NCBI GenBank assembly: GCA_003427395.1
Contig: BFEA01000014.1
Span: 5,394,470 to 5,458,469, forward strand
DNA: 64,000 nt
Direction: 5' to 3'
Source of the DNA: Chara braunii
Lineage: Eukaryota; Plantae; Charophyceae
How positions within the stretch are numbered: the first letter of the stretch is position 1; every line of letters begins with the position of its first letter. The notes under the pieces are model-generated. The model saw nothing but the letters and a program-made list of their open reading frames with translations, was not told where the DNA came from and searched no databases. The position numbers and the translations under genes were made by a program. Below, one piece after another: positions 4,441 to 60,386 of this stretch.

Positions 4441-4540
4441 GTGCTTCCACACCTGTTAAATTTGGAACAATACAGAGAAAGAAGATTAGCATAGCCCCTG
4501 TGCACAAGGATGACACACAAAAATCCAGAAATGGTCCTAA
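4441..4540 (+). pseudogene. U6: U6 snRNA-derived retrocopy 1
   Basis: ttggaacaatacagaga[aaga]agattagcatagcccctgtgcacaaggatgacacacaaaaatccagaaatggtcc, followed by an A/C-rich tail. Direct repeat gtgtgctgtgt at 4432-4442 and 4581-4591. Confidence 0.88.
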
Positions 4541-4929
4541 TAAAACAACTTGAAACAACAAACACACAAACAAACAAGGAGTGTGCTGTGTTCAGTGACA
4601 AGAAAGAGGGTGTCACATGAATGAGGTGTTTGTGAAGATGGATGTGTGTACACTGTACATGGACCTAGTTGCAAAAGGGAAGAGCAGACGAAGGGGCTCC
4701 TTGATTTCGTTCAAAAAATATAATATGTCCGTTTTGACGAAATGGCTGTTATAGAAGATAGTGAGATACATCTGCCGCTCCGAATACCAGGCGATGTATC
4801 TTGCCACCAAGTATGGGAAGATTCACTCGCAACTTTTCAAGTCTGGTGGTTAGTGTTGTGTGGCCCTATCTCACACGTCAACCCATCAGTGATATGGCTG
4901 ACTAACTGTTACAGCTTTTCACTACATTC

Positions 4930-4960
<31 letters not shown>

Positions 4961-5172
4961 GAACTTCAAAAGAGAAAGGGCATATGCACACTGACAGCTT
5001 TTGACATGTTTTCGGACGGAAATGCAGCCGGATGCAATGCACGTGGAAAAGCACTTGGTCAAACCGAGCAACAGGAGGATCACATCTACTAGCAAGCCGG
5101 ATCGGGAGATAAACGTCGGAAGTGGTAGATAGGTAGGCCGAGGTGAAATTGAGAGAAAACTGAAGCTTACTC

Positions 5173-5205
<33 letters not shown>

Positions 5206-5500
5206 ATAGAAGTCAGAACGAATGGCGATAAATCAAATCAATTAACAATTTAAGTTATTTTACGCATTTAAAAAAAAAAAAAAAACATAAATCATAAATG
5301 TATATTGTCATGTATCACGCGCCTATGGGGCAAAAGGCATGAACCGTAAAATACGCTGAAGAATCAATATACTCGGACGATTGATTCTTACTCAGAGTCT
5401 TTCTTTATTTACCCCTAGCCACAAGTCATCCCTGTATTTTGCCACATACGTGGGTTCGGTCCTCCAAGGCCTGTTCGGACTCTCTTCAACCTGCTCAAGG

Positions 5501-5637
5501 CTAGATCACCCGGTTTCGGGTCCTGCGCGCTTAGTATTAGTATATGCTCCGGGCTTGGTATAGATCACCCGGTTTCGGGTCCCGCGCGCTTAGTATTTGC
5601 ACCATGTACTACTGCTAGATCGCCCGGTTTCGGGTCC
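5501..5637. repeat. Three copies of tagatc(a/g)cccggtttcgggtcc with a small hairpin
   Basis: Units at about 5501, 5560 and 5615. Confidence 0.85.
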
Positions 5638-6392
5638 AGGCTTGAACCATGTCTCCCAAAATAAATCAGTACATACGGCGTAAGACGATTTCACGGATCG
5701 AGGTCGGAATGGGATCGGGTGTTTTCACGTCCTACAGGTGTGTTTTTGTGTGTTTTATTTATTATATTATTCATGTATTTTTCATCAAGTTAATTGCAGA
5801 TTTGTCGTATCTAGTCTAAGAGTCCTTCTGCTGTGCTCTTTGTTTTTCTCTGTTTTTCAGTTTCTTTTTGTTCAAACCTTCCGAGTCTGCAGCAATGAAT
5901 ATGATTTTGTCACATGGAGGAGTTTTGTATTTTGATTACAGGTGTTACCTTATCCAATACAAAAAAGATACAAATTAGTACTCATATGAACTAAATGCAC
6001 ACACTTTGCAAAACGAATAAATAATAAATATAGACATAAAAACTGTCTTCGGCGATATCTTCTCCCTGCAATTTGCAATCACAGCATGAAGGAACTCCTT
6101 CCAAGTTCACACACGACTTCAGGAGAAAAAAAAAAACAAAAAACAAAACAAAAAAAAAAACTATGTCTTGTCTTCCTGAGTCAATTTGTTCGCCGACAAC
6201 GTAGCAGTTGGAGCAAGGACCACAACTTGCCCTACTTTTTCTCTTCGCTGTGAAGCATGAACGAAAATGAAGACGGGAAACCGAGCCAAACGAATCCGTG
6301 ACGAGCGTTCCCTCTCAAAAAAGCAGCTAGTATTTTTCTCACACAGCAATAACTCTGCCCATTTCGTCAAACCGGATAGACAAAAATATTAA

Positions 6393-6577
6393 CCCACCAG
6401 TACCCACCGTGTTTTTAGTTGTTAACGAGGTGGATGAATCGGCCTACTGCGCGGGTCTGTTTTTAGTGACCACCGTGTTTTTAGTTGTTAACGAGGTGGA
6501 TGAATCGGCCTACCGCACTGGTCTGTATTCATTCACGTGAGAGGGGGCCTAAGAACCCAGCAGTAGGTACCGGTGGT
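6393..6577. mobile_element. Family-B-related element with an internal ~65-bp duplication
   Basis: TTAA-cccaccagtacc...ggtaccggtggt-TTAA. Other family-B termini at 34725, 48737, 50338, about 51220 and about 59885. Confidence 0.72.
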
Positions 6578-6960
6578 TTAAATACCCTTCCATGCATTCA
6601 CAGACACTGGAAACATATGCCTGTGCAGGACATGCCAGGCCCCGTTTAACAAATGCCAAGGCCGGCCCCCTGTGGAAAGCATGCATGTGCAATGCATGCC
6701 TGGCCAAGTCGAACGCATGCCCTGTGCAAACAAATGCCCCGTGGATTCCGCGTGGGTTCGCTGTGGAACACATGCTCAGTAACTTGGCGTTTTCTTTTTT
6801 TTGAGTACAGTGTACACCCAATTCCTAACTGCCTGATTGAAAAAAAATACTGCCACGAACTATATGAAACTATGTGAAACTATGTGAAACTATTTGAAAC
6901 TATTTGAAAGGAAGGACAAATGTGTTGAGCTGCGCGTCGAGGGACTATAATGTGAAACAA

Positions 6961-6995
<35 letters not shown>

Positions 6996-7199
6996 CGGGG
7001 GGGACTAGGTACAAATGTGTTGAACTGACAATGTGCGAACTGAGGGAAACTGTACGGAAATGGTGCAAAATGACGTGAAAACACTGAAAAGGTGGGGGGA
7101 ACTGCGTGAAACGGGGTTGACGAGAGTGGAAATGTGTGAAACCATGCCAACCAGTGTGAGAGTGAGACTGTGGTCAAACTGTGTGAACCGGAACAAGTT

Positions 7200-12361: not shown

Positions 12362-12428
12362 CTGTCATGTGTTGTGCCCCTCACCCCATTTGTTTGATTT
12401 TATATATACCCCTAAAGGCTTTTCACAC

Positions 12429-13937
12429 TTCCTTTCGTGGGGTATTGGAATCTGGCACGTCCTCCGCAGTCGCCTTGGCCTTCGCTCCTGCATGCAGGTC
12501 TGCCTTGCGCGGCGAATCTGGCATGTCCTCCGCAATCGCCTTGGCCTTCGCTCCTGCATGCAGGTCTGCCTTGCGCGGCTCGGGGTGCGATGCTGTCTTC
12601 TTGAACAACCTCGACGAGAGACCGGTGTGTGCGGGCACAAAGTCGGGATCATGCTGCTGGACGACCAGGATAGAGGCAGACATTTTCATTTCTTTGCCTG
12701 TCAGCACATCACCAATCACGCCCAATTCGTGTGCATCGACACGGTTCGCGTGCTCTGGAACAGGAAGACGCGCAACGATCCGGGAAGGACGCCTACCCCT
12801 CCCAATGATCACAAGGTCGACGCCCTGTGCAGTAGCCAGGTGAATCACCCTTCCAATAACATCGTCGGCCGGCACTTGCTCCACCGAGAACCGCAGCTCG
12901 CCATTGTTCTGCGGCATTTCCTGCATCAGACTGTCTGCGGTAGCCTGGGTGTCGGCGATCGCAGCGTCGTCTTTCGCCAACTCCTCCTCCTCACGCCGGC
13001 GAAGCTCTGCGGGATCGATGGTTTGGAGCTTGCCATGACGATGGTCGTGGCTGCTTCCGGCAGTCCAGTTGAAGAACTGGTAGTGATGTCGGTCATGCGA
13101 CACATTTTCGATACTGCTGCCGCCCGCAACATGCAGAGAAGTATCCTTGGAAGCACTCTCCTTGAACCGCACAACTCTGACGACTGCGTTCGGGCGCTCC
13201 AGCATGCGTCGACCGAGAGCAAGACACTCTCTGTCGTCTTGGCCGCCGAAGAAAAGAATCAAGATGTGATAGGTCACCTCGTTTGACGGAATATGCGACG
13301 AATTGCCGATTCCTCGGTCCACTAGGATTCCAACCGAGCATGGCGCATGTCGCAGGACGTTCCTGTTGACGTGATGGAAGCCTGGGTGTGCAACGTCAAG
13401 CAGTCCATCGAGAGCTGAGTCCTTGTGGAAAGGTACGATGATCATATTGGCCCGCTTTTCCGCAGCAGTACTGCATATATCTTCGTGCATCTGGCTCGTC
13501 GTTGCGATAGCGATCATAGGCCGCACAAGAATCTTTGCGACTCGCCCGTACGCTTGGAACATCGTTCCCACGTTATCGACGCCGTCAATGTTCTTGTTCA
13601 CAAAGGGCTTTCCTTCTTTCCTGGCCTTCGCTACCATCTTGATTGCAGATGAACGCTCCGAATACTCTATCAAATGCAGGAGGTACACTCTCAATGCCTT
13701 CTTTCTCCTTCCCTTGACGAGCTCCGACACGTGAACCATCGAAGCAATGTTGCGAATGCCGTGGACACACATAAACAACCGAATCTCGTCGCTGCCATCA
13801 TCCATGGCGATCCTCCGCCGGTCGTACGCCACCGCCTTTTCCTTGGGAGCCGTAAGTAGGCTGACAATGGGACTCGTCATGAAAGTTGTAATAATTGCCA
13901 TCAGGACCAAAATCGCAAACAGCCGGTTGCCGAGAAC
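12429..13937 (-). CDS. CHX: CHX exon: last TM helix plus C-terminal cytosolic (USP-like) domain
   Basis: Acceptor ggacAG at 13939-13938 joins in frame to give VLGNRLFAILVLMAIITTFMTSP. Motifs LLHLIEYSERSS, MHEDIC, IIVPFHK, VLRHAPCSVGILVDRG, FFGGQDDRECL, ELGVIGDVL, SILVVQQH. If unspliced, it reads to the stop at 12423. Confidence 0.95.
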
Positions 13938-14356
13938 CTGTCCATATAACGAAATCCATGTTGATCAAACAGAGCACGGACGAGTTGAAATTAGTGTTTA
14001 CCNNNNNNNNNNNNNNNNNNNNNNNNNNNNNNNNNNNNNNNNNNNNNNNNNNNNNNNNNNNNNNNNNNNNNNNNNNNNNNNNNNNNNNNNNNNNNNNNNN
14101 NNNNNNNNNNNNNNNNNNNNNNNNNNNNNNNNNNNNNNNNNNNNNNNNNNNNNNNNNNNNNNNNNNNNNNNNNNNNNNNNNNNNNNNNNNNNNNNNNNNN
14201 NNNNNNNNNNNNNNNNNNNNNNNNNNNNNNNNNNNNNNNNNNNNNNNNNNNNNNNNNNNNNNNNNNNNNNNNNNNNNNNNNNNNNNNNNNNNNNNNNNNN
14301 NNNNNNNNNNNNNNNNNNNNNNGTTTGTGACGATATATATATATCATCACAGATAT

Positions 14357-14535
14357 ATGGTAAAGAATTTCGATGTGACCGTGAGGCAAAAGTTGTTCAG
14401 TTTTTTTTTCTGCATAACATAGTTTTTTTTCGGATTTTTTTTTTTTTTTTTTTTTGCTAGGACCGTCGCTGGTCTTTGCATGGCCGGACCGTCCAGGAAA
14501 ATAGGGTGACCCGGGCGGCCCGGCTGGTAGCCTAG
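14357..14535. mobile_element. MITE family C right half (left end not seen, probably in the gap)
   Basis: aagaatttcgat...aaaagttgttcagttt...gacccgggcggcccggctggtagcctag matches about 60485-60653. Confidence 0.75.
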
Positions 14536-15589
14536 GTGTTTACACAGGAGGAAAAAAAAAAAAAAAAAAAAAAAAAGGCTTCAGTCCCTTGACGGGAAAC
14601 AACACTCCATAAACTAGTAGTCACTGACAGGCAATGGCAGACTCTGAGAGGATAACCTAATTAACAGGATAACCTAATTAATGAATTATAGCCTAGGTGA
14701 TGATGAACTACAAAGGCAAGTCCAGTACAAAAGGTACCCTGAATAACAGGAAAAAGTCCCATGACTCATTTGGACCAAAAGCACAAAACGTCCACACAGT
14801 CACAACATCCTGTGATGTAACAGACTGCATCTCACAGAGTGTAGAATCATATCATACCTGCACGGTGCAATGCGCAAAATGCGCGATACACACTTGGCTA
14901 ATTGCACGCGCGCACTCACGCACCGAGGGCACAGGTGCTTGCGACTGCCCCTCAGGCTGATGCATGTGCAGCGTGCAATTTTTCATTATTATTATTATTA
15001 TTTTTATGTATATATGCAGCTCTCGTGCTCGCTTTAGGCTTCGTGAGAAACTCTTCCCTACACGCAAGCGGTGACGTTCTGGCGACAGAACGATGCTTTT
15101 ACTTTCCCCGCCAATTCAAAGATTAGTCTGGACCTCGCTCCACTGCGCGGCTTTCTTTTTTCTCTTTTTTTAAGTTTCTTATGGTTTTCACAACTTCTCA
15201 GATTCAATACAGCCATGATGAGGGTGTCAGACGTCTGACAAGCACAACGGACCCTCATTATGGCTGTATCGGACCTCAAAGATAGCTTGGAAACATTTGG
15301 AATTCTGGGGGGCTGCAAATACACGGTACAATTTTTCTGTGCGCAGGCTGCTGTCATGCACGGCACTGTTTTTTTTTTTTTTTTTTTGTCACTTGATTTT
15401 TTAGCAGGGAGGGTGTGTCCGGCCACATACCCCGCCCCTCTGAGAGCTCTTCCCTGACGCCTATGTTCGGGATGTGATGCATCACCGTGCCCGTGCACAC
15501 ATGCGTGCTGTAGGTATGGTTAGAATCCTTGTTTTTTGTTTTTCTTTTGAAACAACGGCGGACGCGGCATGTTTTGAGTTCCTAAAGGC

Positions 15590-15658
15590 GGGCCTGAGTT
15601 CGAAAAGGCATTCGTAACTCAGGCCGGCGGTGGTGTCAGGGCGGAGGTTTCATTAAGG

Positions 15659-15695
<37 letters not shown>

Positions 15696-16310
15696 GGTCG
15701 GTCGGGCCGCGCTATGCCCTGTCTCTTATACACATCTAGATGTGTATAAGANNNNNNNNNNNNNNNNNNNNNNNNNNNNNNNNNNNNNNNNNNNNNNNNN
15801 NNNNNNNNNNNNNNNNNNNNNNNNNNNNNNNNNNNNNNNNNNNNNNNNNNNNNNNNNNNNNNNNNNNNNNNNNNNNNNNNNNNNNNNNNNNNNNNNNNNN
15901 NNNNNNNNNNNNNNNNNNNNNNNNNNNNNNNNNNNNNNNNNNNNNNNNNNNNNNNNNNNNNNNNNNNNNNNNNNNNNNNNNNNNNNNNNNNNNNNNNNNN
16001 NNNNNNNNNNNNNNNNNNNNNNNNNNNNNNNNNNNNNNNNNNNNNNNNNNNNNNNNNNNNNNNNNNNNNNNNNNNNNNNNNNNNNNNNNNNNNNNNNNNN
16101 NNNNNNNNNNNNNNNNNNNNNNNNNNNNNNNNNNNNNNNNNNNNNNNNNNNNNNNNNNNNNNNNNNNNNNNNNNNNNNNNNNNNNNNNNNNNNNNNNNNN
16201 NNNNNNNNNNNNNNNNNNNNNNNNNNNAAAAAACATAACCGCGTTAATGAATCCTCCGCCCTGACACCACCGCCGACCTGAGTTACGGATGCCTTTCCGA
16301 ACCCAGGCCC
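15590..16310. mobile_element. Probable MITE with ~66-bp inverted arms spanning a gap in the CHX intron
   Basis: gggcctgagttcgaaaaggcattcgtaactcagg...cattaa / reverse complement at 16244-16310, with several mismatches. Confidence 0.6.
15719..15751. other. Nextera mate-pair junction adapter (Tn5 mosaic ends), an assembly contaminant
   Basis: Exact CTGTCTCTTATACACATCT+AGATGTGTATAAGA at a contig edge next to an N-gap. Confidence 0.97.
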
Positions 16311-16989
16311 TGACACAGACGCCGGTGCCTGTTTTTTCTGCCCATTACGAACTCCCATGTGACATAAACGTACTTCCCCCTTTTCTTTTTCCCCTTTTTT
16401 TTCCCAGTTCCGCTTGCATCAAGCAAATAGCATTCTCCCTTCTGCCCCTTTGTGTGTTTTTTCTTCTTCTTCCTCTTCTTCACCATCTCCCTTCTATCCT
16501 GTTCCTGGTTCTGTTGTCCTGATGTGTGAGCTGGTTGATGAGTGACTGGTTTTTGAAGTCAGTTTGTCTTTTCGTCAACTGCAGCCTCTGCCAGGCAAAT
16601 AAGATCCTTTTCTTTTGTGGGGGAGGGAAAAAAAAAAAAAAAAAAAAAAAAGTTGGCAGTGTTGACATCTTGGCAGTCCGCCTCAATCAGCCTCGTATGA
16701 CAAGGCAACCTCGCGGCGGGGGATTTTACGCCACAGGACAAACATAGAACCACCCAGTTCTTTTTGCTGAATCCTTTTAAAAAATATGGCCTGCTTCTCT
16801 ATGACTCAGCGTAGGATAATATTCCATTGGCTCCAGTAAGTTGTGAGGTCTGCTTTTTACCCAGGGTGGTATCTTGCGAGGGGTGATACGAGGATCCGCG
16901 AGTAGCACCGTTGGAAGTAAATTCATGAGGGCATTAACAAAAACGTTGGCTAAGTTAAGTAGCATGATAGGGATATAAATGAAACTTAC

Positions 16990-17969
16990 CCCTTTCTCTC
17001 TTCCGATGTTGAGAACAATCAGCTCGACCAGACCCTTGGTGTTCATGAGCACGCCGAAAACAAACGACTTCTTTGGAGGCAGTTTAGTTAACCGAGCCGC
17101 GACATAAACCCCTCCGACTTTGCCGGCTGTTGCAACGGAGACGACGAGGATGAGAACGCCGACCAGACGCAGAGAATCAATGGAGCCGATTTCCGTTTTC
17201 AGACCAGACGACACGAAATAGAGAGGCAGGAGCAAAGTGCTGGTGAAGTCTTCCACCTTCTCGATCAACGCCCCCGCGAAATGACCGTCTTTAGGAATGA
17301 TCAGACCGAATAGGAATGCGCCGAAAATCGCATGGATCCCGCAGAGGTCCGTCGCAAATGCCGAAGCAAGGCAGAGGAGTAGGGTTATGGCAACAATCTG
17401 CTCAGGGATTGGCTCGTCGGCCGGACAACGCTGCGCTAGTTTCGCCATGAAAGGCTTTACGAGAACGAAGGTTACAAGGCAGAAGAGAAGGCCCATGAGG
17501 AGATCGTAGACGCAAAACACCGGTTTGTCTGAATTGGTAAGCGAAACAGCCAGTGCAAGGAACACCCATGCAACCACGTCTCCGACAGCAGCGGCTGCCA
17601 TAGCCAAACCTCCAACGTCTGTAGTCAGCAACTTGAACTCCGCCAAAATACGAGCGAGGACAGGAAAGGCCGTGATGGACATGGAGACTCCCATGAAAAC
17701 CACAAAGGCGCCGAAGCCAGTGCCAGAGTTCTTTACGATGTCGCCCATGACTTCACCATCATCATACAGAAATTTAGCAACGCCCACTCCTAGCACAAAC
17801 GGTACCGCGATCCCTGCCACCGATATTGCAGCTGTAGCTGCTCCTGCCGTCTTCAAAGACTCCGGATCCAGCTCCAGTCCAACCAGAAATAAGAAAAAGA
17901 TAAGCCCAATGGTAGCAAAGGACTCGAGGACATGCAACGAACTTTTGGGAAAGAGGTGCTCCGTGAAGC
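16990..17969 (-). CDS. CHX: Cation/H+ exchanger (plant CHX, CPA2 family), transmembrane Na_H_Exchanger exon
   Basis: ORF 16777..17985 has CHX motifs (GLIFFLFLVGLELD, SITAFPVLARILAEFKLLTTDVG, GIHAIFGAFLFGL, LLLPLYFVSSGLKT, LMNTKGLVELIVLNIG). Acceptor ttttgtgcAG at 17971-17970; donor GTAAGT begins at 16989 after ...REKG. N-terminal exon(s) not found. Confidence 0.95.
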
Positions 17970-18049
17970 CTGCACAAAACCACACACCAAATCGTACATC
18001 GAACGCACCTCCTTGTCGTTATGGATCCGTACATGGCGGCTCAGACATC

Positions 18050-24313: not shown

Positions 24314-24425
24314 CTACCATCTTCACCAGAATAGAACGCCCTGTCGTTATAACCCATGTATTTAGCGCAACTTTCGTTCTGGATACAGTTATAATGACCA
24401 GGTGTTCTTTTCGGGGGTGAAGAAG
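24314..24425. mobile_element. MITE family A copy (diverged)
   Basis: ctaccatcttcaccagaatagaacgccc...gttcttttcgggggtgaaga. Confidence 0.75.
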
Positions 24426-24798: not shown

Positions 24799-24868
<70 letters not shown>

Positions 24869-25251: not shown

Positions 25252-25395
25252 CAATGTCTGGTCTGTATCGACCCAAAAAAGTAGAAAAATGTCTGACCTG
25301 TGTCGACCAAGAAAGAGAAAAATGTCTGACCTGTGTCGGCCAAGAAAGAGAAAAATGTCTGACTTGTGTCGGCCAAGGAAGAGAAAAAATGTCTC
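25252..25395. repeat. 33-bp tandem repeat, about 4 copies
   Basis: aaaatgtctgacctgtgtcggccaagaaagaga. Confidence 0.9.
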
Positions 25396-43250: not shown

Positions 43251-43674
43251 AGGCGACACAGTGACTGCCTCTGGGTGGAAATCAGAATGCAGGTTGTCTT
43301 CTGCGGCAGAGCGCAGGTATGTTTGTTGCCCCGCTACCGGACTGTTACTAAAAATAAATGCAGGTCATCTTCGCACATCTGCGGGTCAAACTCGTGGAGA
43401 ATTACATGTGAGCTTTTGTTTTTCTTTTTCTTTTTTTTAAGAAAGAAAGCCAGTCGGTCAGCTAGGAGAGGTGAGGCGCTAGGCTAAACTTTATATTTAT
43501 ATGTGATCTTAATTTCATTTATATATGAACTCTTGTCTACAAATCTAGTGAACATCTGNAGGAGAGGTGAGGCGCTAGGCTAAACTTTATATTTATATGT
43601 GATCTTAATTTCATTTATATATGAACTCTTGTCTACAAATCTAGTGAACATCTGAGATGCACGACTTGGACATA

Positions 43675-44133: not shown

Positions 44134-44197
44134 ATATTCAAATGAAATGTCCGGTGCGGTGAGGTGAGGTGAGGTGAGGCGCTAACTTTATATGTGA

Positions 44198-44315
44198 TTT
44201 TTTTTTATTTTTTTTTATTTTTGGACAATTTCTCGATTTATGTGTGTCATCCTTCCGCAGAGGCCATGCTAATCTTCTCTGCATCATTCCAATTTTAACG
44301 GATGTCCCAAAGGAC
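44198..44315 (-). pseudogene. U6: U6 snRNA-derived retrocopy 2, full length with poly(A) tail
   Basis: Reverse complement gtcctttgggacatccgttaaaattggaatgatgcagagaagattagcatggcctctgcggaaggatgacacacataaatcgagaaattgtccaa plus A-tail. TSD tttatatgtga at 44187-44197 and 44325-44335. Confidence 0.95.
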
Positions 44316-44335
44316 ACTTTTTAATTTATATGTGA

Positions 44336-45320
44336 GGGGTAACTTCGGTGCAGTCACGAAAATAGTTTGTAATTGCATTCGAAACACCGATTTCGCACTT
44401 CAGTCAGGGGCCGAGTTTCAATTGCGGTTGAAACTCGTCCGTATGCAGTTCAGTCAGGGCCCTCGTCTATCCACGAACAGCAGATAAAAAAAAAAAAAAA
44501 AGCATCCCTTATGCTGTGATTGCGGTCCGATACAGGATGCTACAGTACTTGTCTGGAACTGAACGAAGCGAGGCAGTTAGCTGCCTCGCGTGAAATCCGC
44601 CCTGCCTGGCTGGCAGGGCGCTACAAGGACCTCACAACAAAAAGCAAACAAAGGAAACGACATGTCTCACGCTCCTCACATACTGGCCAGATACATTCCT
44701 TAAAGCACTGGTGTAACTTTCACCTAAGTGGATTCATACTTCCTCATTTCTTTTCTTTTCTTTTTTCTCTTTTTCTTTCCTTTTTCCTGTTTGGCCTCCA
44801 TGATCCCTCTGAATTGTGTAGGGCGGCCCCTCCACGCCCCGCCACGCGACATCTGGGCCGCGGCCAATCTGGGCCGTGGCCAATCTGGGGTGTGGCCAAG
44901 ACATCTCGGCCGTGGCCAATCTGGGGTGTGGCCGAGACATCTCGGCCGTGGCCAGTTTGGGGTGTNGCCGAGACATCTCGGCTGTGGCCCAACCGTGGGG
45001 CTGTTTTTGTTTTGTTTTTTGCTTTTTTTCCAGCCGCGGTGCGGCGCGCGACCGGAAAAAAAAACAAAAAACAAAAAACAAAAAAACAACGAAGAAAGAA
45101 AGAAACGGCCACGGCACGGCACACGACGGAAAAAAAAAAAAAAAAAAAAAAAAAGAAACGGCCATGTGCCTGACTGAACTGCTAGAAAAAGCCAGCCCGA
45201 GTTTCAAACTGCTAAAACACAGTTTCAAATGCACTTGAAACTCGGGCCCTGACTAAACTGCTAAAACGCAGTTTCAAATGCAATTACAAACTGTAACCCT
45301 GACTGCGCCGTAGTTTTCTC
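44336..45320. mobile_element. Non-autonomous Mutator-like element (MULE)
   Basis: Imperfect ~90-bp TIRs (ggggtaacttcggtgcagtca...gtttgtaattgcattcgaaac versus reverse complement at about 45240-45320). 9-bp TSD tatatgtga at 44327-44335 and 45321-45329. Internal 33-bp tandem repeat at about 44847-44990. Confidence 0.85.
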
Positions 45321-45597
45321 TATATGTGATCTTAATTTCATTTATATATGAACTCTTGTCTACAAATCTAGTGAACATCTGGGATGCACCACTTGGACAT
45401 ATTAAAATGAAAATGTCCGATGAGGTGACCGTACCACACTCAGTCAGTCTCAGACTGGTGCACTGCATATAGTCACAGGAAGATACGCTGTCAATCGTAT
45501 CAGGGAGAAAGGGCGAAAAGGACAAAAAAGTTTAAAAAACGCAGGGCTGTCACAGACTGACTGTCTTGAAACTGAACATGACGTGTACCATCCTTCA

Positions 45598-45702
45598 GCC
45601 TTCAGGACGTCCGTTAAAATTGGATCGATACTGAGAGTCTGAGAGGACTAGCATGACTCCTGTGCAAGGATGACATGCCCAAATTTAGAAACGGCCCAAC
45701 TT
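45598..45702 (+). pseudogene. U6: U6 snRNA-derived copy 3 (diverged)
   Basis: ggacgtccgttaaaattggatcgatactgaga...tagcatgactcctgtgcaaggatgacatgcccaaatttagaaacggcccaa, followed by A-rich sequence. Confidence 0.85.
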
Positions 45703-47060
45703 GAAATTGGTGGAAAAAGAAAAAACCAACAACGACGCCTACCACTGACTTCTTTTTTTTTTTTTTTGTTGTTAAGAATCTATTTCTTTTTTCCTTCAAA
45801 AAAAAAAAAAAAAACACTGACATTTGACTCCGATAAGCCTCGCCACACCTCTCACCAAATGAGAAAACAGCAAATTTAAAGAACTATTACTTCCATGTTC
45901 TAGTGGAAGATTCGTTCTCATTTTGCACATTGGCTAGGAGGCCAGCTGAGAGCGGATGTCTGATCATTATGATATTGTTATTTGATGAATTTGAATTACT
46001 TCACAGCCATCAAAATACACGCACTTCCCTCTTTTTTTTCCCTTCATTTTCTTTCTTTTGTATTATGCTTTTTTACTTTTCGAGTTGAGTGTCTGTCATC
46101 TTTCGGCATGATGCTGCACAGCTGCATACTAGTGAACTCCGAACAACGCTTCGAAAGTGCACTGCGTGATTGCATTGTTGTGATCTGGTCCATGTTGGCC
46201 TTCAGATGCAACCATGAAATCAAACGTTTGGGAAGGGCTTGAGAAGGACTAGAAGCAGATACCCATCTGATTGGCTCCTTGGCCCCCTCTTCAAGGGATA
46301 ACAATGGAGCCCAGCACTGCAGTGTTCTTTTCCATCCTCACCATCAACGAAGAGCAAAGAGATGTGGCACCCAACCAGGCAAAAGGTTTTCATCATGCCC
46401 AAAAGAAACGAAAACAACAGGACTCGGTTCAAATCAGTGACGCGACACAGAAGACGTTATTATGTGTGAGGTTGCCTCCTGGACACAGGTGTGGCAAATG
46501 GCATGCTGCTAGCAGACCAGAACAGCATACAATGGGCATTGGTAGCGCCGTTCAGACAAGCCATCTTGTGACAATCCCAACATAACCCGCAGCTAAATAC
46601 GGCATGAGGTGACACAGATACAATAGTCCTCAGGGCAACGGCTCCCGTGTTCAGGACCATGTGGTCCTACATAACCCGCATCTACATGTATCAGGACAGT
46701 CACTGCTTTTTTGTACCAGAAACATTAAATTTGCTCGAAGTTCGAACCATGCCAGTGTGGTCCTTTTTGCGATTATCAGACAGTACACATCTCACTGTCT
46801 GTGTAAATGAGGGCAGAGAAGTATCCAGTTTGACGAAGGATAAAACGCTCATATGCCCAAATCCTGACACATCATAGACTTCTCTGAAGCATCCCTGAGA
46901 TTTGTGTGTGCCTATGTGCATCATGTCTTGTGTGTAAGATCACCTAGTAATATCAACACCAGATCCAGGCAGAATCTCATGCCGGTGTGTCTGTGTAACT
47001 CAGGAAGATAATTATCTGGCTTGATGAAGGATACACGATCAGCGGTGCGACTCCGCATGG

Positions 47061-47722
47061 GGCCTGGACCCCACAGGGAAAAACCGTGGAAAAGCGGCGT
47101 GGAAAAACTTATCTCAGACTCCATCGGACAAAGCAGGCCCTGGACACTAAGTGCTGGACAATTTGATCCGTTCAGTGCTGGAGCTAACGCGTTAAGTGTC
47201 CCGCCTGGGGAGTATGCCCGCAAGAGTGAAACTCAAAGTGTGGAAAGCCGATTTCACGACTGCGGGGAGGTTTTCCGGGACCCCACACCCTGGAATATGG
47301 TACCTGGAAACTTTCCACATTTTTTGTTTTCACATCGGGAAAAGTGGCTGTGGAGGAGTGTCCGCCGTATTTTTCTGCCCTTTCCAGAGAGTAGGGGGTG
47401 GGGGGGGCAAGTCCATGGTTGGAAGTTCCTCGCCAACCCACCGGCCCATCCATTGTCCGCCCAATGCCGTTCCCTGGTCCACTGGACAGGGCTACGGACA
47501 TGCTGTTGTCGCCCAATAGGGGGGAAACAGCCCTTCGAACGGACATCAGCGACCACCATCAGGTCCATCTCCAGTTTCCAGCCTTTCCAAGCTCATGGAA
47601 ACTGGCTTTTCCAGTCACTCTGATGGGGTCCCGTCATTCCGCGGGCAAACTCTTCCAAACACTCTTCCACATAAACGCGAAACTCGTCACTTTTCCAACA
47701 GTTTTCCTGTGGGGTCCAGGCC
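47061..47722. mobile_element. MITE with TIR ggcctggaccccacagg (Harbinger-like)
   Basis: Inverted termini at 47061-47082 and 47702-47722; internal tggaaa/tttcca motifs; TSD not conserved. Confidence 0.75.
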
Positions 47723-47842
47723 TAAGTCATATGTTTCTCTGAAGCAGCCCTAAGCTCTGTGAGTGCGCGGGTGTGTGAAGTATCTGTGTAAAATCCAACT
47801 GTTATCAAATTGAAATACAATATCCGCCCAAAATCTCATGTG

Positions 47843-47942
47843 GTCCCTCGTCTCATCCGTGTAAATTGGAACAATACAGAGAAGGCTAGCATGGCCCCTG
47901 CGCAAGGATGTCACGGGTAAACCGAGAAATGGTCCAAATTTT
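47843..47942 (+). pseudogene. U6: U6 snRNA-derived copy 4
   Basis: gtccc...catccgtgtaaattggaacaatacagagaaggctagcatggcccctgcgcaaggatgtcacgggtaaaccgagaaatggtccaaatttt, then an A-rich tail. Confidence 0.92.
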
Positions 47943-49181
47943 ATATTAAAAAAAATAATAACAATCATTTCAAAAAAAGGGAAAAACTGCCGCAGCTGTG
48001 TGGCACTTTTAGTTTGAAATAGGCAAGAAAAGACAAGTGGTGCCTGTGTCATGGTGTGAGTTTCAAAATGTGCAAGTTCAGCGGGGGTCTAAAACTGTGG
48101 TAGTCATTACCCGCACAGGCGCTTGGCAGATTAAGGGTCACCTTTTTTACTCCATTAATTTTTGGGAACTGCTAAAGTTGCCTATGATCCTGAATGCTGC
48201 GTGTGTCACTGTGTGACTCGAACGTAGTACTTGCCCCTTCTGCAGCCTCCCTGAGCTCTGTGCGTGCATCCATCATGTATGGTATGTGTCTAAAATCAAA
48301 ACCCCAAATCCACACAGGTTGTGACGAGTGAAAGGATGGCCACATTTGATGGGAAGTCGGGAACAGTGCCAGTTGCCCAAACAATAATCTTCCTGAAAGG
48401 CCCATTCGTTAAAAAAGATGGTGCGCGCAGCTAAGAGCCAGGCTGAGCCTGAACCCAACAGCAAACTCAAAGCCGCATGCATTGGCACAAACGGCCGTCC
48501 TCAGAAAAACATTCGAGCAATTTGAGAAGCAACCCATGGACCAAGTCAAAGGCATTTCTGTCTTAGGCCACGAGTACCTCACCCAGCTATTGATGCCGAG
48601 CCTGAATTTGACCTGCGTACCAAAAGAAGAGTTGCCTGCTTTTGCCTGGCGCTGACAGCCATTCGGTCCAGTAAAAATGCAGCCGTAAATGAGCCGCATA
48701 TTTGTTTTCCAAGCAGGGAAAAACACTGCGGCTTAAACCACCAGTACACAACCATATATCAGCTGTGGGCCTCTCACCGCCAATTTTGAAGGCGCCAATT
48801 TCAAAGGCCTGAAATGTGACGCCGCCCATTGATGAAATTTATCAACGCGGCCCACTTGCGCCACGGCATTTTCAGAGTAGGTTACCAGAAGTTTCTCCAC
48901 AAGGCTGGGGGCCTGGGCCCATGTACTAGCGGATTAAGAGTCCTAACATGTTACCTGCTGTCATATCGGGCACGGGCAAAAAGGCTCACGTGACGGACCG
49001 ATGGTCCAAAGATCAATTCCCGAAACCACATAGGAAGTGAATGGCCCGCAAGTACGAGATGATTGTAGCCACTCAATCTACCAAGGAAGAGCGCTAGCAG
49101 GGAAGACAGCCCACGGCTTTGAATCACGACTTCACAAATTGGAATGTGGCCTCAAAAAAAAAAAAAAAAAAAAAAAAAGAC

Positions 49182-52200: not shown

Positions 52201-53150
52201 NNNNNNNNNNNNNNNNNNNNNNNNNNNNNNNNNNNNNNNNNNNNNNNNNNNNNNNNNACCGAGCTTCTTCGATGGGCCAGTCACTGTGCCTCCCCTCCAG
52301 TCCCCTCCCCCTATGAACATCAGCAGTCTCTGCTCAATGCCACTCGCTTTTCTGCATCCTGCTGATCATTCTTCTTCTTCTTTTTTTTTGTCCCTCGTGA
52401 TCATTCTTCGCTTTCGTGGATCCTGATTTTTTCTTTGCTTTCATTAAGGTCTCTCTCTCTTGCACGTTCTTTATCTGTCCACTGCCGATGACTGCAATAA
52501 CTTTCAAAATGCAAAAGCCGCTAATCTCAGCAAATGAGGGAAACCGGAGGGGAAAAAAAAAAAAAAAAAAAAAAAAAAAACACGCACAAGGGAAACAAAG
52601 TATGAATTAACTTTCAAACTTGAATCACAACTGAACTTCGTATCACTGAAAGGGAAAGGAAGCCAAAGTAAACTAACAAAAAACGAAATTTAATAAAGAA
52701 GAAAAAAAACGATGTAGACAAAACCGCACACACCTGCACTTGGGACACGGACCCACCACCACAGCACAGAGGGTCTAGTTGCATCACTCCGGGTCACCGC
52801 CATTACTTCAAACGCATACGGACAGGTGGGCTGTCCACATGCATTCAAAATCTTTGTGGATGGCAAGTGGCTCAACTAGGCCCAGAAAGTGGGGTCATCG
52901 TATCCACCATTAATTTAAAACAGTCTGAGGGTGTACTCACACTGGCTCTAATATCTTAATGCATCTAACCATATCTACCGCCGCACCTTCATGCACCTGA
53001 CCGCAATCACATCCGTAAATGAAGTAAAAATGTACTAGAGGTACTAAAAAAAATTGAAGGACATAACAACATGATTGTCACTTCATACGTGCAAGATTGC
53101 GAAGAGTGGGGGAAAAAAAAAAGTGCCATAACACTGAGAAGGAAGTAAGC

Positions 53151-53233
53151 CGGCCTTTTGGCCAAGATCAAGTGTAGTATCTGTTCTGATCAGTTTAATA
53201 TCTGATCCGTGGTCCATTGGGCCACACCATATT
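53151..53233 (+). pseudogene. U2: U2 snRNA 5' fragment (tailless retrocopy)
   Basis: cggccttttggccaagatcaagtgtagtatctgttctgatcagtttaatatctgat... includes the branch-pairing GTAGTA and stops before the Sm site. TSD gaag(t/c)aagccgg at 53142-53153 and 53234-53245. Confidence 0.92.
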
Positions 53234-53786
53234 GAAGCAAGCCGGGATCTATCTGAGCCGCCCCAAAAAAAACAACAAAAAAAGATTTATCTGAACGGGG
53301 AGATCTGTCAGCTCTACAAATATCCAGTGACTGAGGGCATACTCCCACTAGGAATTTTTAACCCATTTCTGGACGTACTTGTGGCCAGATACATCCACAT
53401 CCAGCCATAAACACGGTCAGATACTTTAAAGATAATGCTAGTGTGACTACGCCCTGACAGTTCTCTGTCACATCAGAGGAGAATTTATGGCCATTTGGCC
53501 CATATCCAGGGGCGATACAGCTTTTTGTTAATCTTCCCTTTTCGTTCCGCTTCCTCCTTCCACCGTTCACCACCGTGTTGCTGCTCCCCACCATTAGCTG
53601 GAGCCTCCCCCGGAGTGCTAGGGGTGCCTGCTCTTATCAGCACCTCTAGCACCGACCCGGACTGTTTCTCTTAAAAACAAAAAAAAAATCAACGTGTTAG
53701 AAGAACTGTGACAGACTTGTTCAGCAGTGTTAATTTTTAATTCCCCCCCTTTTTTTCTTTTTTTCTTCTTAAAAAAGTAAAAAAAC

Positions 53787-53885
53787 AATTGGATCCTTTC
53801 TCTCTACATGCGGGTTATCTTTGTGGAGGGGCCATGCTAATCTTCTTTCTCTGTGACGTTCCAATTTTAACGGATGTCCCGAAAT
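53787..53885 (-). pseudogene. U6: U6 snRNA-derived retrocopy 5
   Basis: Reverse complement gggacatccgttaaaattggaacgtcacagaga[aaga]agattagcatggcccctcc..., with an A-rich tail toward 53750. 21-bp direct repeat ctgtgacagacttgttcagca at 53706-53726 and 53927-53947. Confidence 0.9.
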
Positions 53886-55293
53886 CTCACCTTAAAAGTT
53901 GGCGCACTTGTTTGCTGCTGAAAGGCCTGTGACAGACTTGTTCAGCACTGTCATCTGGATTTGGGTCATCATCATCCCATGCGCAGCGAAGCCCACAACT
54001 CCCACTAATCCTTTTTCCACCGTACCTGGCCGCAACTGCGGTCATATACGTCCACTAAAGTCCGAGACAAACTTCCTTCTTTGGAAGTGTCATGATCTAG
54101 ATTCAGGTCATCATTCAATGTACCTCCGAGGCTTTCATAGGTTCTGTGACTCACTTCAAATTTCCAATCGATTTCCCATGTCCTGTCTTTTCCGCAGAGC
54201 TGCACTCACTCTCAGCCATGCTCACTTATCAAGAAAAGATACTCCACCAGTTCATCCGCAGGCGGCACCACAGANTTTGCTCTACACGAGTACCGTGCCA
54301 GAATTTGCAGTGCCCAAGCCCGGCAGAGGCTCGGCGGAAAGGGGCATCCGGAGATTGTTCTCGAAAGCCGCACCGTAGATTCCAGGCTCAGAAAAATGCA
54401 GAAGAAAAGATACTCCACCAGTTCATCCGCAGGCGGCACCACAGATTTTGCTCTACACGAGTACCGNTTTCAAAGGCCGTACCGTAGATTCCAGGCTCAG
54501 AAAAATGCAGAAGAAAAGATACTCCACCAGTTCATCCGCAGGCGGCACCACAGATTTTGCTCAACACGAGTACCGTGCCAAAATTTGCAGTGCCCAGGCC
54601 CGGCAGAGGCTCGGTGGAAAGGGGCAACCGGAGATTGTTTTCAAAGGCCGCACCATAGATTCTCGGCTCTGAGTCAGAAAAGTGCAGCGTTTGCTTTGTC
54701 AATTTAGCTTCGGATGGACCGGACGTTTAAACTTTAAAGCATATTACTCACATTCAGACGTTTATGGACGTACCTGACTGCAATTAGGGACTCCAGTCAC
54801 TTTATCTGACCATGTTTATGGACGTACCTGACTGCAATTAGGGACTCCAGTCACTGTATCTGACCATAACTATGTCCAGATACGAGTCCAAAATGGGGGG
54901 GGGTAGTGGGAATATGCCCTTGTGGGCCTTGTCCGTAGAGGCTCCGTGGGAAGGGGCAACGGTTACCGTAGATTGTTTTCAAAGGCCGCACCGTAGATTC
55001 TAGGCTCAAGAAAGTGCAACTTTTGGTTCGTCAATTTAGCTTCGGATGGACTGGTCGTTTAAGGCATAGTACTCACATTCAGACATTTTAGACAGTTATG
55101 GACGTACCTGACTGCAATTAGGGCCGTCCATTGCTGTAGCTGACCATAATTAAGTCCAGATCTGAGTCCAAAAGGGCCTTAGCTGCTAGTGGGAATATGG
55201 CCAGGCCCAGCAGAGGCTCGGTGGAAAGAGGCAACCGCAGATTGTTTTCAAACGCCGCTCTGTAGATTGTTTTCAAAAGCCGCACTGTAGATT

Positions 55294-55403
55294 CTACCTT
55301 CTTCCCCGAATACAACGTACGGTCATTATCGCTGAATTTAGACTGAAAGATAGCCCAAATTCAGCTGTAATGACCGTACATTGTATTCGGGGGAAGACGG
55401 TAG
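55294..55403. mobile_element. MITE family A copy inserted in the satellite (empty sites visible)
   Basis: attcTA-element-TAggctc versus empty attctaggctc at 54997-55007 and 55891-55901. Confidence 0.92.
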
Positions 55404-55915
55404 GCTCGAAAAAATGCAACTTTTGGTTCATCAATTTAGCTTCGGATGGACTGGTCGTTCAAAGCATGCATACTCACATGCAGACCTTTATGGACGTACC
55501 TGACTGCAATTAGGGCCGTCAGTCACTGTATCTGACCATAGATCTGACTCCAAAATGGCCCAATGGGAGCATGCCCTTGTCCGTAGAGGGTTGGTGGGAA
55601 GGGGCAACCTCATATTGTTTCAAAGGCCGCACTGTAGATTCCAGGCTCGGAAAAATGTCACTTTTGGTTCGTCAATTTGGCTTTGGATGGACGGTGGACT
55701 GGTCGTTCAAAGCATACTCAGGCGTACCTGACTGCGATTAGGGCCGTCAGTCACTGTCTCTGACCATAACTAAGTCCAGATACAAAAGGGCCTACTAGTA
55801 GTGGGAATAATATGCCCTTGTCCGTAGAGGCGCGGTGGGAAGCGGCAACCGTAGATTGTTTTCAAAGGCTGCAGTGCCGCTGCACTATGGATTCTAGGCT
55901 CGGAAAAAATGCAAG

Positions 55916-57842: not shown

Positions 57843-57887
<45 letters not shown>

Positions 57888-57941
57888 NNNNNNNNNNNNN
57901 NNNNNNNNNNNNNNNNNNNNNNNNNNNNNNNNNNNNNNNNN

Positions 57942-57980
<39 letters not shown>

Positions 57981-58272
57981 GTCGTATTCGCTATACACTC
58001 AAAAAAAAGCATGACTGTGCCAGAGAGACTGTTTCGTCGGACTTTCACAGACTCCTAAGGAGGTTGAATGTGTGTTTGTCTGTGTGTGCGAGTGCATTTT
58101 GATGTGGCCTACGCACGTGAACCCCGCCCCCAGAATATGCTAAACACACTGAGGGTTTTCCTCTGAAACCAAGGACCTGCTGGTGTCAAAGTCACTACAA
58201 CTACCTGACCTCCCAAAACCACGGTTAAACCAGCCACCAGTCCGCCACCTGACCTCCTAAAACCACCCTTAA

Positions 58273-58451
58273 ACCGCCAGTACCTTTCCCAGTCAAAAAT
58301 AAAATGCCCGTCGGTTAACACGGAGGCTGTCCCCAGGCAGCCAGGCCAGCCAGATACATTCCAAAATTAATGCTCGGAGCGCTGGCCAGATACGTTCCAA
58401 ATGCTCGGCGCACAGGGCCTTCGGCCAACATATGGGAAAGGTACTGGCGGT
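58273..58451. mobile_element. MITE family B copy
   Basis: TTAA-accgccagtacctttccc...gggaaaggtactggcggt-TTGA; interior homologous to 56686-56843. Confidence 0.88.
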
Positions 58452-58876
58452 TTGAACTACCAGTCCGCCGGAGCCTCTTTTTCCCATGCCGATTTCTGCT
58501 GAGCACCAATCCCTACCTAGTAACCAGCATGGCATGCGATTTGTCTGCCAACCCCAGCGCTTTCCGCCTGGTAGACCCTACCTAGCTGGGCAGTGGATTG
58601 TCGGTGACGTCGAAACTTGAAACGCCTTCCGCCTTACACATTCACAATTTCACAAGAGTCTGCAATTGTGTGGGACTCAGCTCTCCCATCTTCACCACAA
58701 TTGAACACCCAGTCATTCTAGCTGTAGTGGGTCCAGCTTGCAGTCTAGGTACAGCGATAACGCCTGTCAGTGAGCAGAATTCTCTTTGGGTGACGACGGT
58801 AGTGGTTTTCTCAAGCACGGCAGAATCTGTTGTGGGATTCATGGCATGCGACCGGCGTGCCACTGTCTATCAACCC

Positions 58877-59100
58877 ACCACACTCCTTTGGACTATAGCG
58901 CTCAACCGTGCCTGTAGCACTCAACACTACTTTGGACTACAGCGCTCGACTGTGCCTGTAGCACTCAACACACTCCTTTGGACTATAGCTCTCAACTGCA
59001 CCTGTAGCACTCGAAACTACTTTGGACTATAGTGCTCAACTGTGCCTGTAGCACTCAACACTACTTTGGACTATAGAGCTCAACTGTGCCTGCAGCACTC
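58877..59100. repeat. 42-44-bp tandem repeat, about 5 copies
   Basis: cactactttggactatagcgctcaactgtgcctgtagcactcaa. Confidence 0.92.
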
Positions 59101-59149
59101 GTTGCCAACTGTGCATTTGACTGATGGATGGAGTCACCATGTCCCTGCG

Positions 59150-59220
59150 AAAGTGATTCAGTAGGTTTCATGCCAGGGCTGCACTGAGTAGGTGCTGGGT
59201 TCAAAACCCATTGCTGTCAC
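59150..59220 (+). mobile_element. Degenerate tRNA-like SINE head
   Basis: A-box-like gtgattcagtagg and B-box-like gggttcaaaaccc. No tail or TSD identified. Confidence 0.3.
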
Positions 59221-60264
59221 TCTCAGTGGCCTGAGGATGGCAGAGGTCACAGAATGACGCTGGTCAGTTTCACTGCCAGTGGGGCGACTGGCGCTGCCCT
59301 GTAACCCACCGGTATCATTGCGGGAGCATGAGGCCTGGCGGAGAGATGTCGGGAAGTCCCAGCATGCGTCGGCAACGCCTGGTAATTATCGCCGTATCTG
59401 GGCTGAAAGTTGCACCAAATACAGTGATAATGTCCGGCTGTTCTATTCGGGTGACGACAGTAGTATCCGGTGGGAAACCCCTGCTCAGGTTCTACTGCGG
59501 GCAGTGTTGGGACATATCCCTCACGAATTCTGTAGTTTTCCTCCCGTCTTCACCGGAGTACAACCATACTACTACAACCTACAATCATTATTGCTGTATT
59601 AGACTGAAAGCTACCCCAAACTTTACCCGAATAAAATGTACCATCATTATTCCTGTATTTAGTCTGAAAGATACCCCAGATACGGCTTTAATGACCGTAC
59701 GGTATATTCTGGTTAGACCAACACTGAGTACCTACCGCATTCTTAGGCTGGCTCTGAGTCGAATTAAGTTTTTTTTTTTTTTTTCGTTTTTCTTTTTCTT
59801 TTTCTGTGGAATGCATTTGGCTCTGCGCGGCAGGCTGATTCCTCCACTGCGTTAACGGCCTAAGAACGTGGAGGTACTGGTGGTGTAAGACTGTAGACAG
59901 AATCATCTTTAGCTGAGGCCTGGCAGAGAGATCTGGACAAGTGGCCCCCACATCACCAGCAGGCTGGGAGCGGGCCAGAAGGATACACACAGTGGCATTT
60001 CTCTGCCCATATCGGATTTTTATGGCCAACACCATCAGAACTAGTAAGAAATAAAGCCACAGCACATCGGAAACGGGGCGAAAGGGACTCAAAGTACCAG
60101 TTCAATCCTAAGATCATTCTGCGCGTATGGTCAACATTTTACTCCACTCCATCCTCCCCACTCCCCCCCCCCCCCCCCCCCCCTCCTCTTCCTCCACCAT
60201 CACTAACTCTCCTTGCCTAATTAGGAAAAAAGGACAAACACGAGTTTATGCCATTAAACACACA

Positions 60265-60386
60265 GTCCTCCGGGGCATCGGTTACAATAGGAACAATATG
60301 GAGAATGAAGATTATCACGGCCCCTGCACAAGGATGACACGCCCCTGCACAAGGATGACACGCCTAAATCAAGAAGTGGTTCAAAT
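60265..60386 (+). pseudogene. U6: U6 snRNA-derived copy 6 with internal 21-bp duplication
   Basis: gtcctccggggcatcggttacaataggaacaatatggaga[atga]agattatcacg(gcccctgcacaaggatgacac)x2 gcctaaatcaagaagtggttcaaat. Confidence 0.85.

Follow-up and report, generated by a model that had tools for sequence, protein, structure and literature searches.

Dispersed U6 snRNA retrocopies, probably made by LINE enzymes, in the streptophyte alga Chara braunii

Results

U6 copies of the window

The stretch of Chara braunii DNA analysed here (the window; 64,000 nt, of which 58,358 nt are resolved sequence) contains six U6-like sequences that are real, independently inserted and dead RNA-derived copies of U6 snRNA. 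We favour the reading, to which we give a probability of about 0.78, that these are LINE-made processed pseudogenes (retrocopies) of U6, present in unusual abundance. The Rfam U6 model RF00026 matches the window at six places with 45–83 bits each, the gathering score of 44 bits being our cut-off for calling copies, and every match covers model positions 1–105; the E-values (4e-8 to 1e-19) therefore exclude chance. All six of the near-full-length sequences named in a preliminary description of the window are thus recovered, four on the plus strand and two on the minus strand, and with pairwise identities of 70–82% each carries its own mutations, as that description had said. The copies resemble one another in the U6 core alone, and the likeness ends at its edges, so that flanks are not shared; homology extends over the mature RNA only, with +1 and the 3' U run as its limits. 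A-rich 3' sequence, earlier ascribed to most copies, accompanies all six, in copy 6 after 44 unrelated bases. Target-site duplications (TSDs) of 11–26 nt flank copies 1, 2 and 5, those of 25 and 26 nt being strong and that of 11 nt marginal; these are the three duplications previously proposed. No copy, tail or TSD spans a run of N.

Copy 1 (4441–4541, plus strand; 63 bits over 4432–4545, also found by nhmmer and alignment) is about 16% diverged from canonical Chara U6, and the alignment places a duplicated AGAA in the region 4472–4489. Its 5' TSD at 4417–4442 (exact core 4432–4442) is 26 nt long and 92% identical (E 4e-5) to the 3' TSD at 4566–4591, whose exact core of 11 nt lies at 4581–4591; the A-rich tail fills 4542–4565. 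Copy 2 (44220–44315, minus strand; 83 bits over 44215–44315) is of canonical type and, at 9% divergence, the best preserved of the window. Nine extra bases separate its U6 start from the 11 nt 5' TSD at 44325–44335, and the tail (44198–44219) is followed directly by the 3' TSD (44187–44197); the TSD score of 10, against a shuffle 95th percentile of 9 and maximum of 11, is marginal, yet the repeat sits exactly at the tail end. Copy 5 (53783–53887, minus strand; 60.5 bits over 53783–53890) is 21% diverged and carries the AGAA duplication, with a T run leading into an A-rich tail (53731–53782). Sequence comparison against a shuffle null gives it a strong TSD, at 53927–53951 on the 5' side and 53706–53730 on the 3' side (21 nt exact, or 25 nt with one mismatch; score 22, null maximum 11). 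Between the 5' TSD and U6 lie 39 extra bases (53888–53926), which are possibly a template-switch add-on.

The remaining three copies, all on the plus strand, have no TSD detectable by sequence inspection and shuffle scoring. Copy 3 with its A-rich 3' sequence occupies 45597–45735 (46 bits over 45590–45705), is 19% diverged and has an 8 nt tandem duplication of its own in the ACAGAGA region. Copy 4 (47843–47986; 80 bits over 47840–47943) is of canonical type and 13% diverged; its terminal T run is preserved, ahead of an A-rich tail. Copy 6 (60265–60386; 45 bits over 60265–60368) is 17% diverged, includes the 4 nt insertion and contains a perfect internal tandem duplication of 21 nt (60320–60340 and 60341–60361). 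It has a chimeric U6-X-poly(A) layout, the 44 unrelated bases and an A tail extending over 60387–60447, and its 3' TSD is beyond assessment because the tail abuts a gap of 25 N at 60448–60472.

Two further snRNA-derived sequences accompany the six. A 5'-truncated U6 fragment with A-rich flanks lies at 1644–1692 on the minus strand (local nhmmer E 5e-6, model positions 39–85), and the 5' part of a U2 snRNA lies, as a retrocopy, at 53146–53288 on the plus strand (RF00004, 79 bits), 500 nt from copy 5; its U2 sequence is followed by about 12 further bases and then an A-rich tract (53266–53288), and the event is of the same kind as those that gave the U6 copies. None of the added sequences (copy 5, copy 6 and the U2 copy) has another match in the window or in 12 other loci. 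A sub-threshold match to bacterial-type SSU rRNA at 47004–47325 was not reproduced on a narrower stretch and was discarded.

Copies elsewhere in the genome

A biased sample of 12 other Chara scaffolds, amounting to 270 kb of resolved DNA, yielded five further U6 copies, on three of the scaffolds, four of the copies with an A-rich tail. Those at L006:4437, L007:29990 and L007:23657 are only 2–4% diverged, and all three carry an A tail together with a TSD (13, 10 and at least 6 nt, respectively); their consensus is canonical plant-type U6, from which these youngest copies differ by private changes only. U2 5' parts with A tracts adjoin U6 copies both in the window and in L007, which suggests a general retroposition of snRNAs.

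The density in this sample is about one copy per 54 kb (five in 270 kb). The figure of one per 10 kb given in the preliminary description is correct arithmetic for the window and does not carry over to the genome, the window being a local cluster (Poisson P of about 9e-4). The density of the sample would mean, as a very rough estimate, some 10,000–75,000 U6 copies genome-wide (order 10^4–10^5). The suggestion of a massively amplified U6 retroposon stands as regards number, which even so roughly estimated is far above that in mammals, and is not supported as regards a self-propagating element.

One LINE reverse transcriptase fragment with a FADD motif was found at L004:22007–22810, with human L1 ORF2p as its best match (98 bits, versus 77 for R2); neither a 3' end nor a tail was seen with it, and a protein search for its Chara relatives returned no Chara protein. 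No U6-LINE chimera was seen and no LINE is tied to the U6 copies, and the starts of the TSDs, at six sites only, offer no obvious L1-type TT/AAAA target.

Promoters, substitutions and the AGAA duplication

U6 promoters lie upstream of the transcribed sequence in plants and animals. Neither a USE of land-plant type (up to two mismatches) nor a TATA box near -30, the elements by which true U6 genes were earlier proposed to be recognized, occurs upstream of any copy, the consensus used being that of land plants, which may not be Chara's. No conserved upstream sequence was found among the copies, and outside U6 and the A-rich stretches their alignments reveal neither a common body nor a tail of LINE origin. 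The substitutions radiate star-like from canonical plant-type U6, and derived changes are shared at chance level (11 observed, 10.9 expected), a pattern in keeping with an unchanging source RNA that was copied again and again.

The one sign of subfamily structure among the 11 copies, far too small a sample to judge such structure by, is a 4 nt duplication of AGAA after the ACAGAG box in four of them (copies 1, 5 and 6 and L007:30568). This hints, from the alignment, at a second, variant source lineage. Spacing is critical in the part of U6 where the change falls, so that the RNA it came from was probably not a U6 at work in the spliceosome. Further short tandem duplications occur in copy 3, copy 6 and the copy L007c, so that recurrent slippage on the purine tract is a possible origin of the AGAA duplication as well.

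Discussion

The combination of an A-rich tail with a TSD of variable length at independent insertions is the signature of LINE target-primed reverse transcription, as the preliminary description had recognized. On the reading of the copies as processed pseudogenes, the template would be mature or oligo-adenylated U6, or else U6 onto which the enzyme had switched templates from a poly(A) RNA, and reverse transcription would take place at nicked chromosomal sites through poly(A)-dependent, L1-type LINE enzymes acting in trans. Each event would leave a nearly full-length U6 with an A-rich tail and a TSD of variable length, and some would add extra sequence, as on the 5' side of copy 5 and the 3' side of copy 6. 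Lacking an upstream promoter, the copies would be dead on arrival and each would therefore decay on its own; the range of divergence, from 2% to 21%, indicates that copying has run long. Canonical U6 would have been one source; for older copies a variant U6 transcript bearing the AGAA duplication was probably another. The data show the homology to U6, the tails and TSDs, the unshared flanks, the occurrence on further scaffolds, the star-like divergence and an L1-like reverse transcriptase in the genome; the identity of the copying LINE, the way the A tail is gained and the genome-wide number are inferences. Several observations weigh on the other side: half of the window copies have no detectable TSD, the six available TSD starts offer no obvious TT/AAAA site, no LINE is tied to the copies and no U6-LINE chimera was seen, the AGAA duplication in 4 of 11 copies is left unexplained by a single canonical source, and the density is far above that of any system in which such a passive mechanism is documented.

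Processed pseudogenes of U6 in mammals are reportedly the work of LINE-1 (Doucet et al., 2015, who cite Buzdin, 2002, and Garcia-Perez, 2007). The Chara copies resemble the mammalian ones (Doucet et al., 2015; PMC4476161) in comprising nearly full-length U6 with an A-rich 3' extension or chimera and variable TSDs, and in lying scattered over both strands as dead-on-arrival copies, with 3'-truncated U2 copies alongside. The L1-made set in mammals includes U6 with poly(A), U6 chimeras and copies truncated at the 3' end, and TSDs accompany about 80% (PMC4476161). The Chara copies differ in their host, a streptophyte alga, in the U6-LINE chimera unseen so far, in the want of a clear TT/AAAA target site, and in the recurrent AGAA variant. 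They differ also in density: the human genome holds 906 U6 copies at 90% identity or more (PMC4476161), about one per 3.4 Mb, whereas such copies occur in Chara at about one per 90 kb (three in 270 kb), so that young copies are about 40 times as dense as in human, a very rough figure from a biased sample. The layouts of copies 5 and 6 are those expected of a reverse transcriptase jumping between RNAs, as in template-switch chimeric retrogenes of mammals and Magnaporthe (PMC2104539), although here the partner sequences find no match in the window or the 12 loci.

The principal alternative is a true U6-headed SINE, in which one or a few transcriptionally competent U6-derived masters, for example the AGAA variant, propagate through LINE machinery in the manner of Alu. 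The very high copy number would suit such an element, as would the identical 4 nt duplication in copies 1, 5 and 6 and L007:30568, whose position makes a working spliceosomal U6 a doubtful source. Yet the copies have no common body or LINE-derived tail, carry no promoter motif or conserved upstream sequence, and apart from the AGAA indel share derived changes no more often than chance would have it, while the youngest are canonical with private changes only; moreover, internal promoters are unreported for snRNA genes (PMC4494074), and the other tandem duplications (copy 3, copy 6 and L007c) leave room for slippage. For these reasons the SINE-like, self-propagating family of the preliminary description finds no support in the body, tail, upstream sequence or substitution pattern of the copies, and we consider a U6-headed SINE unlikely. 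The composite proposal that U6 is a major interspersed repeat of tens of thousands of copies, derived in part from a transcribed, retropositionally competent master with the AGAA duplication in the interval that separates its ACAGAGA box from its AGC triad, and so the first U6-headed SINE-like lineage, is also improbable, if marginally less so.

Known SINEs illustrate the difference. The SINEU elements of crocodilians (Kojima, 2015; PMC4494074) likewise have an snRNA-derived 5' end and are LINE-mobilized units, as we propose for the Chara copies; their heads, U1 or U2, are joined to a shared body and 3' terminus, which together define families, whereas U6 and an A-rich tail are all that the Chara copies have in common. 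Alu and B1, the 7SL-derived, poly(A)-tailed and L1-dependent SINEs, resemble the Chara copies in being small units derived from a Pol III RNA, with an A tail, TSDs and very high copy number, and, on the favoured reading, in using the machinery of a poly(A)-dependent LINE in trans; Alu, however, has an internal Pol III promoter and hierarchical subfamilies, where the Chara copies are star-like.

A second possibility is that some copies, especially 3, 4 and 6, which have no TSD, were spread as cargo of LTR elements or DNA transposons with U6 cassettes. A repeat 28–294 nt downstream of copy 4 does recur 290–620 nt downstream of copy 6 and at 14358–14539, and the U6 at L003:15504, highly diverged, sits in a setting of another kind. 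The repeat, however, lies at differing distances and in differing internal order by copies 4 and 6 and occurs without U6 too, and the Gypsy element of the window (about 24–34 kb) contains none of the six copies. Copies 3, 4 and 6, at 13–19% divergence, are old enough that decay could have erased a short TSD, and the 3' side of copy 6 is lost in a gap; we regard carriage as cargo as very improbable.

That the copies form a cluster of real U6 genes, arose by segmental or tandem duplication, or are artefacts of assembly is scarcely credible: five copies do lie within 16 kb, with several gaps nearby and duplicated stretches next to single-N gaps, but the flanks are unshared (so that the segmental duplication earlier named as a potential refutation is rejected, the more so with five copies on 3 of 12 other scaffolds), the copies lie on both strands, 9–21% diverged and with disabling indels, they have tails and TSDs, and the intact sequence and conserved upstream elements of functional genes are not found among them.

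The processed-pseudogene reading has consequences for Chara and beyond. Should the rough density be borne out, no case of snRNA retroposition more extreme than that of Chara would be known; by our literature search it would also be the first found in the green lineage, and the trans-mobilization of U6 known from vertebrate LINEs would operate at large scale in streptophyte algae too. No account of U6 retrocopies in Chara, other plants or algae came up in that search, in keeping with the earlier statement that the family was not recognized as described; the Chara genome paper lay outside it. Such retrocopies inflate Rfam-based counts of snRNA genes and complicate annotation of the Chara genome, and dated copies could mark LINE activity through time, as in mammals. 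The AGAA-duplication lineage would offer a direct test of how a dead copy of a small RNA might become a source of retroposons.

Identification and anatomy of the U6 copies

Six places in the window exceed the gathering cut-off of the Rfam U6 model (RF00026), each covering the entire model: copy 1 at 4432-4545(+) with 63 bits, copy 2 at 44215-44315(-) with 83 bits, copy 3 at 45590-45705(+) with 46 bits, copy 4 at 47840-47943(+) with 80 bits, copy 5 at 53783-53890(-) with 60.5 bits and copy 6 at 60265-60368(+) with 45 bits. These coordinates agree within a few bases with those of the preliminary description, and a local nhmmer search of the window adds a 5'-truncated U6 piece at 1644-1692(-). 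The window contains 5,642 N in 17 runs, and gaps cross none of the U6 copies, tails or TSDs; distances between copies are uncertain across gaps, although the tally of 6 per 58,358 resolved bases is unaffected. A single N at 43559 separates two 95-nt stretches (43464-43558 and 43560-43654) that are 100% identical, and the single-N positions 54275 and 54467 are bordered by near-identical stretches of 65-170 nt; these duplicated stretches have the look of tandem repeats or of artefacts from gap closing.

A-rich 3' sequence, previously claimed for most copies, is found in all six, and the three TSDs claimed are all present. That of copy 1 comprises 11 exact nt (4432-4442 / 4581-4591), or 26 nt at 92% when extended; that of copy 2, also 11 exact nt (44325-44335 / 44187-44197), is marginal against shuffled controls and lies directly after the tail; and that of copy 5, which is exact over 21 nt and reaches 25 nt if one mismatch is allowed, is far above the null. 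No TSD was found for copies 3, 4 and 6, the 3' junction of copy 6 being unreadable because its A tail abuts a 25-N gap at 60448-60472. In copy 5, 39 unexplained bases separate the 5' TSD from U6, and in copy 6 the U6 is followed by 44 unrelated bases and then the A tail. Neither add-on occurs a second time in the window or the sampled loci, and both layouts are of the kind that template switching during reverse transcription yields in mammals (PMC4476161).

Parts of U2 lie beside the U6 copies. Rfam places a U2 5' part at 53146-53253 (79 bits); it belongs to one of two U2 5'-part retrocopies (window 53146-53288; 22777-22878(-) in L007, a locus on another Chara scaffold) that are each within 1 kb of a U6 retrocopy. 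The window retrocopy stops near U2 position 95 and is followed by about 12 bases and an A-rich tract; the other stops near position 78 and is directly continued by 24 A.

Copies elsewhere in the genome

The Gypsy RT ORF of the window shows 78-88% identity to annotated Chara braunii proteins, and the related annotated proteins, which map to assembly GCA_003427395.1, were used to retrieve 12 loci on 12 scaffolds (318,895 nt in total, 269,838 of them resolved). At the Rfam gathering threshold this sample holds five U6 copies, the one U2 5' part in L007 and an ordinary tRNA-Met gene. Three of the U6 copies are young and have A-rich tails: L006:4437-4537 (TSD 13 nt), L007:29990-30090 (TSD 10 nt) and L007:23657-23757(-) (TSD at least 6 nt). 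They differ by 2-4% from their own common consensus, which is canonical plant-type U6, and the window copies diverge from that consensus by 9-21%; U6 retroposition is therefore long-lasting and not restricted to the window. The highly diverged U6-like sequence at L003:15504-15608(+), 37% from canonical and without an A tail, lies in a GC-rich setting, has a tRNA-like stretch upstream, and may be a repeat-borne U6 cassette.

In the outside loci a copy occurs about every 54 kb (95% interval under a Poisson model, 1/23 kb to 1/166 kb), and the true uncertainty of this density exceeds the interval because the sample is small, Gypsy-chosen and clustered, with three copies in one locus. The Chara braunii assembly comprises about 1.75 Gb, to which the outside density scales, very roughly, as 10,000-75,000 U6 copies. 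Its six copies put the window about 5.5-fold above the outside rate (P about 9e-4), so that the density of one per 10 kb proposed earlier holds for the window as a local cluster but not genome-wide. Clustering is strong overall: five U6 and one U2 retrocopies are packed into 16 kb of the window (44.2-60.4 kb), three U6 and one U2 into 8 kb of L007 (22.7-30.7 kb), and 9 of the 12 outside loci have no snRNA retrocopy. The human genome has 906 U6 matches of at least 90% identity (PMC4476161), which amounts to one in about 3.4 Mb; with three such copies in 270 kb, the outside sample is some 40 times denser.

Mechanism

The copies combine a 5'-complete U6, terminal T in varying number, an A-rich tail and TSDs of 6-26 nt with unrelated sequences; some have extra bases on the 5' or 3' side, and U2 5' parts followed by A tracts lie close by. 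This anatomy is the hallmark that a LINE leaves when it copies U6 RNA in trans by target-primed reverse transcription, a process worked out for L1 in mammals (PMC4476161); the tail and variable-length TSD had been read in this way beforehand, and the match to the mammalian L1 case bears this out. U6 RNA would be reverse-transcribed at the target site by the LINE acting in trans, and every copy would be newly produced from a constant source RNA, then decay alone.

An L1-like element exists in the Chara genome, because a LINE-type RT fragment at L004:22007-22810 (FADD motif, Pfam RVT_1) scores higher against human L1 ORF2p than against R2 proteins (98 versus 77 bits). The wider region L004:22007-24700(+) is a decayed L1-like LINE whose downstream frames look, by eye, like the zinc-finger part of a plant L1 ORF2. 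Since a search for relatives of the RT fragment gave no Chara protein from which a complete element could be traced, no U6-LINE chimera was seen in the window or the sampled loci, and none of the six readable TSD starts has a clear TT/AAAA site, which LINE copied U6 and how the tail arises are matters that we infer.

SINE family or processed pseudogenes

The preliminary description proposed a SINE-like family; with the exception of one variant lineage, the tests run do not support self-propagation of this kind. A search for a module common to the copies returned nothing besides U6 and A-rich sequence, whereas SINEU links its U1/U2 heads to a common body and terminus (PMC4494074). Upstream sequences are unrelated, with neither a USE (up to 2 mismatches) nor a TATA near -30 before any copy, these being land-plant motifs that may not be Chara's own; an internal promoter, moreover, is not reported for snRNA genes (PMC4494074). 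Among ten copies, 11 non-CpG derived-substitution (site, base) classes occur in at least two, against 10.9 expected under random placement of the changes within each copy. Sharing is thus at chance level, and the pattern is star-like, as expected for fresh copying from a constant source RNA followed by solitary decay.

The exception is a 4-nt insertion common to copies 1, 5 and 6 and the copy at L007:30568, all four old (11-21% diverged), in a sample without power for linkage. It reads as a tandem AGAA duplication immediately 3' of the ACAGAG box. Four independent identical events seem unlikely, and a variant source transcript is therefore the better reading; these copies are, however, rich in other short tandem duplications (copy 3, copy 6 and L007c, one of the three in L007), so recurrent slippage may instead be responsible. 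Segmental or tandem duplication as the origin of the copies is excluded, since their 70-82% identity is confined to the U6 core in an all-against-all comparison with 300 nt of flank per side.

LINE-made U6 retrocopies in very large number are supported, and of the massively amplified U6-derived retroposon first envisaged it is the self-propagating family that finds no support in these tests outside the one variant lineage. U6 processed pseudogenes are known; here they occur in a new lineage and at unusual density. A literature search of incomplete coverage found no report of U6 retrocopies in Chara, other green plants or algae, which accords with the earlier remark that nothing of the kind was recognised as described.

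Neighbouring repeats and genes

One retroposon 3' end of about 95 nt, rare in the sample, has inverted copies (window 53595-53690(+); L006:4612-4705(-); 71-73% identical) whose poly(A) ends are 15-25 nt away from copy 5 and from the young L006 copy, respectively; insertion close to older A/T tails may account for the coincidence. An unclassified repeat of 73-78% identity (47971-48237, 60655-60988 and 14358-14539) is found downstream of copies 4 and 6 at differing distances and with differing internal order, one occurrence being without U6. A Ty3/Gypsy retrotransposon at about 24000-34000(-), with RT, RNase H and integrase ORFs and a strong purine skew, is interrupted by a gap (30373-30792) and contains no U6 copy. 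The exons at 12423-17985(-) belong to a gene for a plant CHX-type cation/H+ antiporter, with the Na_H_Exchanger domain and the second and C-terminal domains of CHX17. Palindromic hairpins at 45004-45085 and 55292-55405 matched a number of miRNA precursor models in both orientations, at scores far under the gathering level, and are probably inverted-repeat (MITE-like) elements.
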